Shown: one piece after another, positions 11,682 to 17,831 of the stretch
How positions within the stretch are numbered: position 1 is the first letter of the stretch
Layout: each line of letters opens with the position of its first letter
Assembly: GCA_020891255.1 (NCBI GenBank)
Contig: BQFW01000006.1
Coordinates: 2,108,001 to 2,172,000 of the forward strand
Source of the DNA: Entomortierella parvispora E1425
Taxonomy: Eukaryota > Fungi > Mortierellomycota
Length of the DNA: 64,000 nucleotides
Reading direction: 5' to 3'
The notes under the pieces: model-generated
The model's input: only the letters and a program-made list of their open reading frames with translations
Database searches by the model: none
What the model was told of the DNA's origin: nothing
Program-made: the position numbers and the translations under genes

Positions 11682-13302
11682 ATGACCCACACCAAGGACC
11701 TGCCTACCCCTGCCAACCCTGGTCCCTTTGGCCATGCTCAACGCAAGAACTTTCTCTTCCCCGAGGGTTACACCCAGTTCAACCATGGATCCTTTGGTAA
11801 ACTATGAACAAGCTTTGACTTTCATCTGGGTTTACGAGGAAAACGTTCAAGAGTCATTAACACGGGCCACGCTGGGGGGTTTTTTTTTTCTCTCGTTTCA
11901 TGGTAATCAGGTACTTTTCCAAAGTCCGTCCAGGATGCCATGATTGAGTGGCACCAACGCGCCGAGCGCAACCCTGGTAAGCATGGGATTTTTTTCCCCG
12001 CGCCCTACAACCAAGATGAATGTCAACTAGCCGGCAAGGAGAGAAAAAAAACAAGGAGTTTGTTGTTGGTCACGTTCAATTTTCTCACGGTCCTCCACTT
12101 TCCTCTATTTTCCTCTTTCAAACAGATCTGTGGATGCGTCGCGACCTCTATTCGTCCCTGAAGCAACTCCGAACCGACCTCGGCGACTTTTTGAACTGCT
12201 CTGCCGACGAGTTGGCCTTGGTGACCAACACGACTCAGGGCGCCAACACCATTATTCGCTCTTTGGACTTCCAACCGGGTGATCGTATCCTCCAGTTCTC
12301 GACCGGCTACGTCTCTGTGGACAAGACGGTGGAATATGTCTGCGATACCTTGGACGACGTCAAGATCGTCCAGGTCCCTGTGACCTACCCCATCTCGGAC
12401 GAGGATCTGTTGAAGAAGGTCGAGGAAACTGTGGAGGCGCATCGTCAATTGAAGGACGGATCCAGGATCCGATTGGCCATCGTGGACTGGATCTCGAGTG
12501 TGCCCTCGATCTTGCACCCCGTCCACAAATTGGTCGACTACTTGCAAGGAGAGGGGATCTTGGTCTTTGTCGATGGCGCACATTCGATCGGCCAGGTCCC
12601 TGTGGATCTCACGGCTTTGCACCCTGATTTCTACATCACCAACGCTCACAAGGTAAAAAAAAAAAAAAAAGAGAAAAAAGTTTAATCCCTGAAAAAGAAT
12701 GCCCAAATCCTGACTACCTTCCCCTTTCTTCTCTGATACACACCATACAGTGGCTCTTCAGTGTCCGTGGATCGGCTGTTCTCTATGTGGCCAAGCGTCA
12801 TCAGGCAAAGATCCACCCAACTTCTATCACGGGCGATTACAAAAAGGGATTCGACGCCGAGTTCGCATGGTCCGGCACTCAGGATTACTCTTCGCTTATG
12901 TCCATCTCGGACGCCTTGAAGTTCCGCAAGCAATACGGAGAGGACGCCATCATCAACTACACACACCGATTGGCTGTCGAGGGCGGCGCCGCTATTGCCA
13001 AGATCCTCGGCACCAACACTTTGACGCCTGATGATCACCAGGTCGCCAACATGGTCAACATTCGTCTCCCCATTCACGACTTTGATCACCCTACCTTGAA
13101 GGAGAACCCTAATTATATCATGGACTTGATGTTTGACAAGTTCAACGTCTTTACACCTGCCTTCAAGCACGATGGAAAGTGGTGGACGCGTGTCTCGGCC
13201 CAGATCTATTTGGAGTTGTCGGACTTTGTCCGATTGGGCAACATCTGGAAGGAGGTCTGCGATGATCTCAATGCCTTGGTTCTAACGAACTCGAGACAAT
13301 AG
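11682..13302 (+). CDS. EGT2: PLP-dependent class-V aminotransferase / C-S lyase, hercynylcysteine sulfoxide lyase (Egt2)-like, 4 exons
   Basis: FGHAQRKNFLFPEGYTQFNHGSFG|TFP; LVTNTTQGANT; VDGAHSIGQ; PDFYITNAHK|WLFSVRG (PLP lysine); C-terminal WTRVSAQIYLE. Confidence 0.85.
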
Positions 13303-13879
13303 CGCGGGAAATCATGGTCGATGAATTGAGTTCAACTAACCCTCTGGGATCTTGGTCCGACCATGATGATTGGGATGGTTAGAGCACTCGACCATTGACA
13401 AAGGCGACCATTCCCATTCCTTCAGAAAAGATCGGTCGCCAACACGTCCAATAATATATCCCTGTTTCTACTGTCAGTTTGAAAGATTGTTTATTTTTTT
13501 TCCTTTTTTTTTTCTTTTTTCTGTTGATACCAGTACAATGGCAGGTGCATGGATGGATCTGATAATGAAACAGAAAACGAGAGAGATCAATAGAAAAAAG
13601 AATGCATGAACACATTTTTGTTTTTTTGTGTGTCAAGGACGATTTATTTTGCGCAAAGGGTCAGGGGCCAACAACTTTATCATATGTTACTTTGCGCCGT
13701 CGTCCCCCAAACTGCAAAGCATGAAAACGAACAACAAAAAAACGGAATCCCGTCATTCCCTCATCTAAAAAACTTCAATTAAAAGGAAGAAACACGACTT
13801 TTTTTTTTTTATATTAAAAAACGAAGCTATGCAAAAGCAAAAAAAAAAGGGCAGCAAGAGTAACATTCCCTCAACTCTT

Positions 13880-16800
13880 TCAATATATCCTTTCCATGAT
13901 GGTCTCCAGCGTTACACGCTCGTCCGCATGGACCGTCATCATATCCTGTAGTAATCTCGCAATAGATCCTGAGGGATCCAGGATTTGACTCCGCTCGTAC
14001 GCTGCCGACATTTCCTGTGCTGAACCCGGGCCGCCATAAGAATACTGAGCCGGCACAGGGGGTGAGGGTGGGTAGGGCACTCTAAAGTTCTGCGACGTCC
14101 ATCCGCCTTGATTCGACCATCCTCCGACCAATGCCCAAGCTTCCGCTTCTGTTTGGAACAGTGCTTGACCGCCCGTCAGAATCTCATAGTAGACACAACC
14201 CAGTGACCAGGCATCCATGCAAGCTTCTGCCGGATACGTCGTATCGCCCGCACGCCAAGCTTCCAACAATTCTGGTGCTGTATAGGCTGCTGGCAATGGG
14301 TTTCCTCCGATCCGATCCATCTTTTCCTCGTGCTGACGCTGTTCCATGAACGCAAACGATTCTTGACCGACGCCCAGATGTGAGGGCGATGCCGATCCAG
14401 AAGAAGGTCCAGAGCTATGCTGTCCCATCTCATGTCCTCCTCCGCCGCCTACAAGACCGACAGGCTCGCCAATAAACCGTGCACATGTGAAATCCCAGAG
14501 CTTCCAGGATGCACCTTCGGTCATGGGATCGATTCCGTCCTCCAAAAAGAAACTTCCAGGTTGGATATTCAAGTGAACCACGCCATGGCGATGACACCAT
14601 TCCACCGCCGCAGAGACGGATCTCAGGATGGATCGTGCATGGGCCGCCGTCTGGACAGGGCCAAGATCCGACAAAAGACTACTGCAACCGCCCATGGCAT
14701 TCACAAACGGATAGGTATGGACCCGGTTCTGAAGGGATGGAATACAGTACGACTCCAACAGCTCCATCACAAAGATGGGGCTCTTGAGGTGCTTCAACAG
14801 CGCGGCTTCGCGCTTCCAGTGAATCTCGGTCATGTACCATTTGAGCGTCGCCACTTCGAATGTGTGCTGGTTCTCACACTCTGTCAAAAGCATAGAGCTC
14901 TCTCCTGCTGCTGCCACGGCATCCGCTGATCCCGCTGCAGCTGAATTCATATCGACTCGACTTCTCCGGATGACCACAGTACCGGAACGGGCCACGCCTG
15001 GGGAGGCTCCTCCTTGTCTTTTGATTGAACGGGCACTCCTGGGTAGCGACACGACGTGATAGGTGCCCAACACCAAGCGCCCTGTGGGTCCGTGAGGGCT
15101 GATCATATGTGCGTCCGGCGTCTCGTACCGAATCACCTGCAGTTGAATCTTTTCCTCAAACCGCTTCCCGCTCTTGGCGTTCCTGCGCGCAAAGTTGGAG
15201 GTCGTGGAACTGACAGAGATGGAATGTGTCAGTCCTTGAGGCGTGTGCGTTTCGTGTTGGTTGTGTCTCATCGCAGCCTCCAGAGGGATCGTCGAGTCCA
15301 AATTGGATTGAACACTGTTCCTGGGATCATTGGCGAGGTACGACGCCCTGGATGGGTAGGGCTGATGCATGTTGCCCTGCTGACTCAAAAACGTGTTTCC
15401 ATATCCATCCTGGGTCCGTGGGGCAGCATATCCAAGTCTCTCCAGGTCATTGTCCAGATGGCGAGGGATCTCGGGCAGACTGCGGTCCTGATGATAGAGA
15501 CCCAGAGGAATGAGGGTATCATCCCGCTTAGCTGGGAAGAGATCCTTTGGTTTCCTGGTCCGCCTTCTCCACAGGATCAAAGCCGCCGCAACAATCATTA
15601 ATACCACCACGCCGCCTACAATCCCCAGAATGACTGCAAGTGGGCTTGTGTGTTTGTGGGTGGGGGACGTTGGGTCGGTAGGGTGAGGCAATGCAGTTCC
15701 AGAAGCAGTTTGCTCTGAAGTGGCTGATCCAGCAACTACAGAGGCGACCAGCTGGGAAGGGTTGACCTGCAAGACGCTACTATCGCTGACGACAAACTGA
15801 TCCTGAGTCAAGGCATTTGGCCCGGTGATGATGCTTTTAGCTACGGCAGCTTTGCCAGTCCAAAAGTATTGGATGAGGGTAGAAGAAGTACTCTAGAAAT
15901 AGAGAAAGAAGAATGAAAGAGAGAGGCGAATGAGAAGAGGCGAGAGGGGGCGTCATCATTTCGAAACCCCGCGATCGCAATAGCCAAAGGTCCCTTGTCC
16001 GTTCTTTTGATAGAGTTGCACCGATCCAAAACTCCATTCCTGATCTCTTACCATTGTTGATCCGAGGAGTGCAACGCCATCGTTGGTGGTCAGCGGCACA
16101 AGGGTCGTGAGCCCAGCAACGACCGAGGTCTCGAAGGTGTGGTCTGTAAAATTGTCCAGATTGATCCGCACAAGTTGCGAGGAGTTGTTGACGGCTGTGT
16201 AGTAGATCCAGAGGGTGGCTGGCCCTCCCGCAGATGACAGTGCCATACCCATGATGCTCGAGTCGCCACTCATTGAAGCGAACCTGCAAAAAATAAAATA
16301 AAAACAGGGGTCGTGTATCAGGCTCTGATTGATTGTGCAAAAGTGCAAAAGTAGAATCAGGTTCCAGCGTCATTTTCTTTGCAACACAAACAAGACGTTG
16401 GTCCATCTTTTGTGGCCTCTAGTCGCTGTTGTGGTTGTGTTCACTGTCCACCGCTCCAACAAGATTCTTTTGAACGTACTGTGTAATGCTGCCGAGGCTA
16501 GAAGCCGCGTTACTGACAAGGTCCCATCGACTGACCTGTCCATTGAGGATGGCTACAGCCACATTGTCGGTTGATCCTGTTAGTCCCAATCCGATTGCAG
16601 TGGTAGGAGCATTCAGTTTCGAGACCTCAAAGCTAGAGGCGGGCGAAGGTCCCGAGTAGTTCCAGGTGGCGACGGGTCCGTTGATGTCAATTTGTCCTGT
16701 AAGGGAGTCTGAGAGGTAGTAGATGGCGGTCGGGCTGCCTTCGAGGCATTTGCCCACCTTGAAGTATTTATCCGCCGCGGGTATTCCGGCCGGGACATAT

Positions 16801-17123
16801 GTCTGTGGGAGAGTCGATGATCCTGGCATGACCTTGGCGAGGGTCACGGTTGTGCCATTGAGTCCTACGATCCAGGCGCCACCGTCGGAACTGGCACAGA
16901 CGGTGGCGATAGAAAGGTTGGTTACAGGTGGTGACTGAGGCTGCCCTGGCCCGAGAGGTGATCCCGAAGGGCTGGAACCGGGGGCCGTGGCTGAAGCTGA
17001 GGCTAGAGAAGGAGTCCCGGAGGGTGCACCGTGCGCTGAAGGCAGAGGAAGGACGAGGGTGTAGAGAGCGGCGAGCAACAGTAGGAGGACCGAGAACGAA
17101 AAGGACGGTGTTGAGGAAGACAT
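13880..17123 (-). CDS. Single-pass transmembrane receptor-like pseudokinase (~962 aa, 3 exons)
   Basis: Exons 17123-16480, 16283-16052 and 15892-13880 join in frame with canonical GT-AG introns. Order: signal peptide, beta-rich ectodomain with NxS/T sequons, TM LAVILGIVGGVVVLMIVAAALILW+RRRTRK, then a kinase fold (ATLK, KREAALLKHL, HLNIQPGS, DFT, YTAPE, DAWSLGC, ER). Confidence 0.82.
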
Positions 17124-17600
17124 GGTCTACTCTCGACTGTGGTTACCGGGTTGTTGCAGCAGAGTCCAAAGAAGGTATGAAGGGGAGGAGAGAAGGGAAA
17201 GGAAAGGGGAAGGAAAGGGATCTCGGCCACAGAGTCCCTGGGGGATGAATTAAAAGTTGGATCCTTGCAAGAAGGCAAAGAATGAATGCAAGAATGCGAG
17301 AATGGGCTGAGCGGGATGATGTCGCATGCACAGGGTCGAGGGGGGAGGACAGGCCCGGGAAGGAGGACCAAGCGCGACGACCGATGAGAGGAGAGGGAGG
17401 AAGAAGGAAGAAGGAAAAGAAGGAAGGAGCAACGACACAAGAAAGAAACAAAGAGAAAGAAAGGACGTATCTCGCGTGGACAAGGTGAATGGTGGGAGGT
17501 ACCTTTGCTTTGGTGCCTGTTTGCTTTGCTCTCTGTGATGTACTTTTGCAGACAAGGAAGGAAGAAGGAGGAAGTAGGGGCGGGCGGGGCTGTGCATAGG

Positions 17601-17639: not shown

Positions 17640-17680
<41 letters not shown>

Positions 17681-17790
17681 CAGCCGCACCCTGCCACTGC
17701 CACTACCGCTGCCACTACCGCTGCCCTGTGCCCTTGCCATGCGATAAGAGAGAGAGGGTCGACTGGACAGGTGCATGTGCTGTAGGTACA

Positions 17791-17831
<41 letters not shown>
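17601..17831. repeat. Microsatellite cluster: (GCCAT)4, (GACA)10, degenerate hexamers and a (GT)n run of about 19 units, in a divergent promoter
   Basis: Read directly at 17601-17620, 17640-17679, about 17691-17730 and 17793-17830. Confidence 0.95.

Follow-up and report, generated by a model that had tools for sequence, protein, structure and literature searches.

A Mortierellaceae gene for a putative receptor-like pseudokinase with a predicted beta-propeller ectodomain

The gene EMPS_04695 of the fungus Entomortierella parvispora E1425 probably encodes an independently evolved, lineage-restricted, type I single-pass receptor-like pseudokinase, in which a predicted six-bladed beta-propeller is joined through one membrane helix to a protein-kinase fold with a dead catalytic loop. 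It lies on the minus strand of contig BQFW01000006.1 (assembly GCA_020891255.1), within a stretch of 64,000 nucleotides (positions 2,108,001 to 2,172,000 of the contig) referred to below as the window; all coordinates are window positions. To our knowledge, fungi are generally described as being without plant- or animal-style receptor kinases. Here, one early-diverging fungal lineage holds a conserved, apparently single-copy gene with the full receptor-kinase layout, for which transcription is seen in an ortholog, and this layout is assembled from two sequence-orphan domains. A previous sequence-only reading of the window had proposed one gene of three in-frame exons, encoding a signal peptide, a beta-rich ectodomain (asked as a beta-propeller) with the sequons NLS, NGT, NYS and NNS, a Ser/Thr/Pro stalk, a single transmembrane helix with RRRTRK, a juxtamembrane region of ~130 amino acids (aa) and a kinase fold. 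In that fold, HLNIQPGS stood for HRDxKPxN and DFT for DFG, the ATLK Lys, alphaC Glu, APE and DxWSLG were kept, and no RNase/KEN domain followed. The evidence given below bears out this layout.

The kinase-like domain and its conservation

The C-terminal part of the protein was matched by the Pfam family PF00069 (Pkinase) at 51.5-53.6 bits against a cut-off of 31.7 (E 1.3e-13 / 2.8e-14), and PF07714 (PK_Tyr_Ser-Thr) reached 19.2-21.2 bits, under its cut-off of 23.1. The nearest sequences in PDB were CASK, PLK, CDKL5, Snf1/AMPK, p38 and CDK2, and hhalign gave a probability of 98.6 to a canonical bacterial Ser/Thr kinase (STK). An ESM-Atlas model, with a predicted local distance difference test (pLDDT) score of 0.49, could be aligned over 255-282 residues to CDKL/CDK/CASK-like clusters at template-modelling (TM) scores of 0.52-0.57.

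Within this fold, the alignment to the loops of CASK and of a bacterial STK placed three replacements in the catalytic loop, namely Asp by Asn734, Lys by Gln736 and Asn by Ser739, and the DFG motif reads DFT with its Asp in place. An activation-segment insert of about 55 aa separates DFT from APE, the Arg of subdomain XI is retained, and the protein ends 12 residues past this subdomain (...IMERIY). For the Gly-rich loop there are two candidate placements. The first is HGPTGRLVLG at aa 559-568, which the sequence-only reading took for the loop, with an insert of ~70 aa after it; in the second, the loop has been lost immediately ahead of SSMLLTE (aa 624). Neither is canonical, and no GxGxxG was present under either reading of the N-lobe. 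The segment SSMLLTECENQHTFEVATLKW (SSMLLTE-CENQH-TFEVATLKW) resembles a beta2-turn-beta3 hairpin in a low-confidence AlphaFold2 (AF2) model, and because of this the Gly loop may have disappeared, not moved.

Exon 3, used as a query against 5.8 billion proteins, returned 43 homologs. All of the named ones belong to Mortierellaceae, in ten genera (Mortierella, Podila, Linnemannia, Lobosporangium, Haplosporangium, Dissophora, Entomortierella, Actinomortierella, Gamsiella and Lunasporangiospora), with identities of 48-68% apart from a single homolog at 92%, and each genome seems to hold a single copy. The conservation of HLN and DFT across orthologs, which the sequence-only reading had put forward as a check, turned out to be complete: all 43 share HLN(I/L)QP(G/A)S, WDFTCAR, KREAALLK and the beta3 motif TLKW, and the H, L, N, Q, P and S of the catalytic loop are invariant in the homologs and the query together. 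A minor variation, YSAPELL in place of YTAPELL, was seen in 1/43. Under the operational definition of a pseudokinase, which asks for a missing VAIK Lys, HRD Asp or DFG Asp in a conserved state, the domain qualifies through the change of the HRD Asp to Asn734 across ten genera.

At the nucleotide level, 31 of the 40 listed differences between EMPS_04695 and a related strain's contig fall at third codon positions, which points to purifying selection on the gene. Taken together with the conserved motifs, these third-position differences argue that the loss of the catalytic-loop residues is ancient and maintained by selection, not a sign of decay, so that the domain is best described as a fixed pseudokinase whose dead state predates the divergence of the Mortierellaceae genera. 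Constraint is unevenly distributed along the protein, with mean identities to orthologs of 26% in the propeller, 17% in the stalk, 55% in the juxtamembrane region, 74% in the N part of the kinase domain and 67% in its C part. A slowly evolving cytoplasmic half (67-74%) next to a fast ectodomain (26%) would fit a conserved output with a diverging input.

Outside the family, the signal stops abruptly. In a kinase-profile search the score fell from 618 bits within the family to 30 bits or less for bacterial STKs, and the same search, used to look for an active sister kinase, gave nothing above 30 bits outside the family. The best such match, P0045, is a 771-aa protein from a metagenome-assembled genome of Streptosporangiaceae that combines a bacterial Ser/Thr kinase with Kelch-type propeller repeats; at 30 bits and E 0.08 it has no homology support past the kinase superfamily and is an architectural analogue. 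The suggestion of a perception system in early-diverging fungi therefore needs narrowing: a conserved family exists, but its homologs were found in Mortierellaceae only and not in early-diverging fungi at large. Public names of the homologs are "hypothetical" or automatic labels such as "CDKL5", "jil-1" and "receptor protein-tyrosine kinase". Full-text literature searches found no paper describing the family, and neither domain showed a sequence relative outside it, in keeping with the earlier suggestion that the system could be an undescribed one.

Ectodomain, membrane topology and gene structure

The ectodomain was modelled with AF2 on the ortholog P0005 (residues 53-335) with 32 relatives, including both exon pieces of the window. 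The resulting model (pLDDT 89.2, predicted TM score 0.89) is all-beta, with 23 strands arranged in six blades of 4+4+4+4+4+3, and we regard the six-bladed propeller fold as established for the family at the level of structure prediction. Foldseek searches of PDB, AlphaFold database clusters and the ESM Atlas with this model returned generic propellers only (TM scores 0.5-0.68). By VIA-align it matched six-bladed Kelch, NHL, fucose-lectin and PknD structures with Z 13-15 over 236-260 residues, and among these neighbours (KLHDC2 of the Kelch type, Brat of the NHL type, AofleA, AFL, AOL, AAL and the PknD sensor) none stands out. The top language-model look-alikes of the ectodomain were clusters of "fucose-specific lectin" and PLL-type lectins, at 0.84, and lectin-like function is a lead only.

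By sequence, the ectodomain is an orphan. Pfam gave no match on the window exons or on 33 ectodomains, with none for PF07938 at E up to 10, and a PDB profile search with the ectodomain found no sequence match. A profile search of 1.84 billion representatives returned, beyond family members and their fragments, only three weak repeat-type matches (P0065, P0066 and P0069), whose Pfam matches lay below the curated cut-offs or came without a qualifying stretch. Two further sequences considered as possible paralogs were set aside: P0067 and P0068 proved to be an ortholog fragment next to a Ysc84 gene and an orphan fragment on a 3-kb contig, respectively. The ectodomain carries six sequons, since NSS248 and NFT259 add to the four already noted (NLS69, NGT89, NYS155 and NNS247), and two Cys residues, C76 and C126, in conserved TxC and GGxC contexts.

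Of the 962 aa, only aa 5-31 and aa 372-402 form hydrophobic segments, and both the signal-peptide and the transmembrane calls were made by Kyte-Doolittle hydropathy only. On this basis the protein has the features of a type I single-pass receptor, with a predicted N-terminal signal peptide, one predicted transmembrane helix and basic residues on the cytoplasmic side. This layout is conserved: the hydrophobic N-terminus is found in all complete orthologs, and the helix with its basic stop-transfer stretch in every ortholog of the alignment. The juxtamembrane region, 135 aa by translation, matched no Pfam family and contains the conserved blocks KDLFPxK..DDTLxPLGLYHQ, IPxEAxL and QGLTHSISVSSTTSNFxRR.

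That these parts belong to one gene is supported first by annotation. The spliced translation of three joined exons, an open frame of 2889 nt and 962 aa, is identical letter for letter to the deposited protein GJJ72338.1 (P0070; EMPS_04695, "hypothetical protein", E. parvispora E1425), and the E. parvispora genome was annotated by AUGUSTUS with RNA-seq-derived cDNA as input (PMC8759367). An in-frame stop lies two codons 5' of M1 (ATG at 17123), and reading through exon 1 in frame reaches a stop at 16419-16421, giving an open reading frame (ORF) of 234 aa. Orthologous proteins of 850-959 aa with the same layout come from independent annotations of more than 20 genomes.

Transcript evidence comes from the ortholog P0014 of Mortierella sp. 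GBAus27b (936 aa), whose uninterrupted 936-codon ORF is present on Logan contigs of five runs (SRR6256837-41). The genomic locus of P0014 requires two introns with GT..AG borders; by blastn both are removed in these contigs, and therefore the contigs come from spliced RNA, and the introns of its convergent neighbour gene are likewise removed. These contigs span the joined ORF, and the ectodomain and kinase exons are accordingly not separate genes. The first intron site in GBAus27b (aa 174/175) matches that of EMPS_04695 exactly and the second lies within one residue, and in Lobosporangium both sites match exactly (aa 203/204 and 278/279), so that three genera share the positions and phases of the introns. 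In addition, the propeller fold is complete only with exons 1-3 together, and the transmembrane helix lies in exon 3, 84 codons past the splice site, in the same exon as the kinase domain. EMPS_04695 is a real, conserved gene.

Table 1 Features of EMPS_04695 in window coordinates.
Feature	Position	Strand	Basis
Whole coding sequence, receptor-like pseudokinase gene EMPS_04695 (3 exons, 962 aa plus stop)	13880..17123	-	Splice sites read, spliced translation
Exon 1	17123..16480	-	Splice-site reading
Intron 1, GTACGT...CAG, phase 2, after aa 214	16284..16479	-	Splice-site reading
Exon 2	16283..16052	-	Splice-site reading
Intron 2, GTAAGA...TAG, phase 0, after aa 292	15893..16051	-	Splice-site reading
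Exon 3	15892..13880	-	Splice-site reading
Predicted signal peptide, aa 1-32; h-region VLLLLLAALYTLVLPLP, c-region SAHG	17028..17123	-	19-mer Kyte-Doolittle maximum 2.3; translation
Ser/Pro/Ala/Gly-rich linker, aa 33-65, not conserved	16929..17027	-	Composition; about 20% identity to orthologs
Ectodomain, aa 66-340, predicted six-bladed beta-propeller (span includes both introns)	15749..16928	-	AF2 model of ortholog
Thr/Ser/Pro-rich stalk, aa 341-375	15644..15748	-	Translation; variable, 17% identity to orthologs
Predicted single transmembrane helix, aa 376-400, then RRRTRK	15569..15643	-	19-mer Kyte-Doolittle up to 2.97; translation
Juxtamembrane region, aa 401-535 (135 aa)	15164..15568	-	Alignment; mean identity 55%
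Ser/Thr cluster SISVSSTTS, aa 516-524, directly before the kinase domain	15197..15223	-	Near-invariant in orthologs
Putative pseudokinase domain, aa 536-962, Pkinase fold with N-lobe and activation-segment inserts	13883..15163	-	PF00069, hhalign, ESM-Atlas
beta3 Lys K643 (ATLKW), retained	14840..14842	-	Invariant column K114 of the family alignment
alphaC Glu E654 (KREAALL), retained	14807..14809	-	Invariant column E125; aligned to CASK alphaC
Degenerate catalytic loop HLNIQPGS, aa 732-739, for HRDxKxxN	14552..14575	-	Aligned to HRDVKPEN (CASK) and HRDIKPGN (bacterial STK)
DFT, aa 759-761, for DFG; metal-binding Asp D759 retained	14486..14494	-	WDFTCA aligned to GDFGVA/GDFGIA
Gly-rich variable activation-segment insert, aa 771-826	14291..14458	-	Unaligned to canonical kinases; variable among orthologs
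APE (831-833) and DAWSLG (852-857), C-lobe, retained	14198..14278	-	Alignment, translation

Gene order around the locus is also kept. EMPS_04695 has a convergent Aminotran_5 gene downstream (window ~11700-13300, plus strand) and a Ysc84 gene upstream, and the microsynteny Ysc84 / EMPS_04695 / Aminotran_5 is shared by Entomortierella and Mortierella sp. GBAus27b. Lobosporangium retains the Aminotran_5 side, and in another Mortierellaceae assembly an N-terminal piece of the gene sits next to Ysc84. In GBAus27b the convergent coding sequences of P0014 and Aminotran_5 end 87 nt apart and the RNA contigs join both transcripts; the 3' untranslated regions of the two genes probably overlap there. The 5' flank of EMPS_04695 holds three microsatellites within 200 bp (window 17640-17831), namely (GACA)11 at 17640-17683, 2.4 copies of a 12-mer at 17697-17725 and (GT)19.5 at 17793-17831. 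These repeats give rise to long spurious ORFs in the flank, where a strong purine/pyrimidine strand skew is also seen.

A scaffold-signalling model and its alternatives

From this architecture we propose how the protein might work. A cleavable signal peptide would direct the glycosylatable six-bladed propeller to the extracytoplasmic side, where the short Ser/Thr/Pro stalk would hold it, one helix with its basic stop-transfer would span the membrane, and the conserved juxtamembrane region and the protein-kinase fold with its dead loop would face the cytoplasm. The propeller may bind an extracellular ligand, for which a glycan is the best guess because the structural neighbours of the propeller are lectin-like, and binding would alter the conformation of the protein or how it oligomerises. 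Instead of phosphorylating, the dead kinase domain would relay the signal allosterically or as a scaffold, through contact with an adaptor or an active kinase in the cytoplasm, in the manner of HER3 and of plant receptor pseudokinases. The SISVSSTTS cluster could serve as a phospho-acceptor or docking site for the partner kinase, and, purely as an analogy, its position brings to mind the GS region of TGF-beta type I receptors. The pseudokinase may also bind nucleotide, given that, as in HER3, it retains the Lys, the Glu and the DFG Asp. Surface location, ligand and scaffold signalling are what we infer, and they go beyond the layout itself.

If the protein is a surface receptor, it would offer an entry point to environment sensing by abundant soil fungi that are root-associated and host endobacteria, a clean example of receptor pseudokinase signalling that evolved convergently, and a new class of pseudokinases for structural work. 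Genetic transformation has been achieved in Mortierella alpina and Linnemannia elongata, which makes the question directly testable. A further-reaching proposal, which we hold only tentatively, is that Mortierellaceae independently invented receptor-(pseudo)kinase perception, in which a lectin-like propeller senses a glycan or microbial cue, the relay runs through a partner kinase and the kinase domain is of CAMK/CMGC-like origin; fungi would then have a first counterpart to the receptor-kinase signalling of plants and animals. Plant roots, or the Burkholderia-related or Mollicutes-related endobacteria that these fungi host, are examples of where such cues could come from.

Several observations weigh against the receptor-like pseudokinase interpretation. 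The AF2 model of the kinase domain, built on the 43-sequence family alignment, is poor (pLDDT 44), because this alignment is shallow and its members too similar (69% mean identity), so that the main support for the kinase fold comes from sequence profiles (hidden Markov model, HMM, and hhalign), plus ESM. The N-lobe upstream of alphaC was aligned by no HMM, and kinases with an Asp-to-Asn change can keep trace activity. On the extracellular side, the modelled ortholog P0005 is only 29-35% identical to the two exon pieces of the window, and the lectin link, at 0.84, is below the tool's own reliability line of 0.9 and comes without Pfam or PDB sequence support. The spliced transcripts are those of P0014 and not of E. 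parvispora; four runs of unspecified kind under the same species label, aligned to window 13700-17300, yielded two diverged genomic contigs and no splice evidence. Of these, X9 is colinear across the whole gene, less than 90% alike and with introns retained (about 115 differences in 800 nt from EMPS_04695), and X4 covers only part of the gene, at its 3' end (56 differences in about 500 nt). Because both carry the gene at less than 90% nucleotide identity, the species label E. parvispora seems to cover clearly different lineages. Finally, the placing of the predicted receptor in the plasma membrane, as opposed to an endoplasmic reticulum (ER) or vacuolar membrane, is itself inferred.

The trace-activity point leads to a rival reading that we consider unlikely, in which the domain is an atypical but active kinase, capable of non-canonical or slow phosphotransfer despite HLN and DFT, and the protein is a true receptor kinase. 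CASK, WNK and, weakly, HER3 are precedents for activity despite degenerate motifs, and CASK, once itself classed as a pseudokinase, is the nearest solved structure by sequence. The invariance of the beta3 Lys, alphaC Glu, DFG Asp, APE and subdomain XI Arg also exceeds what a pure scaffold would strictly need. However, three catalytic-loop residues are replaced together (Asp to Asn, Lys to Gln, Asn to Ser), the first of these changes is the mutation usually chosen to make a kinase inactive, and a canonical Gly-rich loop could not be identified.

About equally unlikely is a cell-wall or matrix anchor or mechanosensor, whose propeller grips wall glycans, for example the fucose-rich polymers of Mucoromycota, on a Wsc1/Mid2-like stalk and whose pseudokinase tethers cortical proteins. 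The Ser/Thr/Pro stalk does adjoin the membrane, AofleA, AFL, AOL and AAL are among the best structural neighbours of the propeller, with "fucose-specific lectin" clusters heading its language-model look-alikes, and one gene per genome in conserved synteny suggests a housekeeping role. Yet a stalk of ~35 aa is short compared with the Wsc/Mid2 nanosprings, no WSC or lectin Pfam match was obtained, and an ectodomain diverging as fast as this one (26% identity) would be unexpected for binding to a constant wall polymer.

An ER-resident, degenerate paralogue of the Ire1/PERK-type stress sensors, with a luminal beta-rich domain and never at the surface, is more improbable still. It would share the type I order of luminal domain, transmembrane helix, linker and kinase as well as large inserts in the kinase domain, and a plant Ire1-like cluster is found among the language-model look-alikes of the whole protein, at 0.88. 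We nevertheless rejected kinship with Ire1/PERK, given that the Ribonuc_2-5A/KEN domain is absent (no match to PF06479 at E up to 1) and the nearest kinases differ: the best matches are CASK, CDKL, CDK, Snf1, PLK and p38, not Ire1 or PERK. Furthermore, no Ire1 luminal domain appears among the listed propeller matches, which Kelch, NHL and lectin structures top, the C-terminus (...IMERIY) has no ER-retention motif, and Ser/Thr/Pro stalks are typical of surface proteins.

Hardly credible, finally, is a gene-model artefact that wrongly joins a secreted-propeller gene to a separate kinase-like gene: although the spliced RNA contigs come from the ortholog only and exon 1 could stand as the 234-aa ORF, the five-run RNA contigs carry the full joined ORF with both introns removed at homologous positions, the propeller needs exons 1-3, the helix shares exon 3 with the kinase domain, and the introns agree in position and phase in three genera.

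Comparison with known receptor systems

The likeness of the receptor-like pseudokinase to plant and animal receptor kinases is one of convergent architecture, because its kinase domain is unrelated to the receptor kinases of plants, animals and oomycetes beyond the superfamily level. By sequence it is nearest to CAMK/CMGC kinases and not to the TK/TKL groups that hold the plant receptor-like kinases (RLKs) and the animal receptor tyrosine kinases. EMPS_04695 thus appears to resemble receptor pseudokinases in kind, yet belongs to no known receptor family.

Among animal proteins, HER3/ErbB3, RYK, PTK7 and ROR are likewise single-pass type I proteins with an impaired kinase domain, and RYK and TGF-beta receptor clusters are among the whole-protein language-model look-alikes of EMPS_04695. 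HER3 has the same Asp-to-Asn change in its catalytic loop (HRN), keeps the Lys and signals by allosteric partnering. However, two further catalytic-loop residues are lost in EMPS_04695 and no homology to these receptors exists beyond the kinase superfamily, and in place of their L/Cys-rich, WIF or Ig domains it carries an orphan propeller.

The plant receptor-like pseudokinases of the RLK/Pelle family (for example MRH1, DRIK1, BIR2 and STRUBBELIG) show the same layout of signal peptide, ectodomain, transmembrane helix, juxtamembrane region and dead kinase, and the idea that receptor kinases can signal non-catalytically carries over (PMC5353636, PMC7158045, PMC11259431). Unlike them, EMPS_04695 has a kinase domain that is not RLK/Pelle (TKL) and an ectodomain that is not of the leucine-rich repeat (LRR), LysM or malectin type. 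It also differs from plant RLKs in being Mortierellaceae-only and apparently a single gene per genome, not an expanded family. In PMC3268121, Soanes and Talbot (2010) are cited for the absence of LRR pattern-recognition receptors from the fungal kingdom.

The nearest architectural analogue is PknD of Mycobacterium tuberculosis, which also combines a six-bladed propeller sensor, one transmembrane helix and a Ser/Thr-kinase fold, and whose ectodomain (1rwi) matched the propeller model with Z 13.3. In PknD, though, the kinase is N-terminal and inside while the propeller is C-terminal and outside; it is an active kinase, bacterial, and its propeller has no sequence similarity to ours.

Within fungi, Ire1 is the main known type I membrane protein with a cytoplasmic kinase domain, in the same order as in EMPS_04695. 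The latter is without the KEN/RNase, has a propeller, a surface-type stalk and a dead catalytic loop, and its kinase domain is not closest to that of Ire1. The fucose lectins (AAL, AFL/FleA, AOL and AofleA; PF07938) and PLL-type lectins have six-bladed propellers of similar size, with about 255 aligned residues. They are soluble, carry neither transmembrane helix nor kinase and are only 7-10% identical to the ectodomain, and since the scores of Kelch and NHL propellers are just as high, what the lectins have in common with it is no more than the fold. Yeast Wsc1-3 and Mid2, lastly, are type I surface sensors with a Ser/Thr-rich stalk and one transmembrane helix, whose tail recruits signalling partners. 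In contrast to EMPS_04695, they have no kinase fold or propeller, bear a Cys-rich WSC head or none, and end in short cytoplasmic tails.

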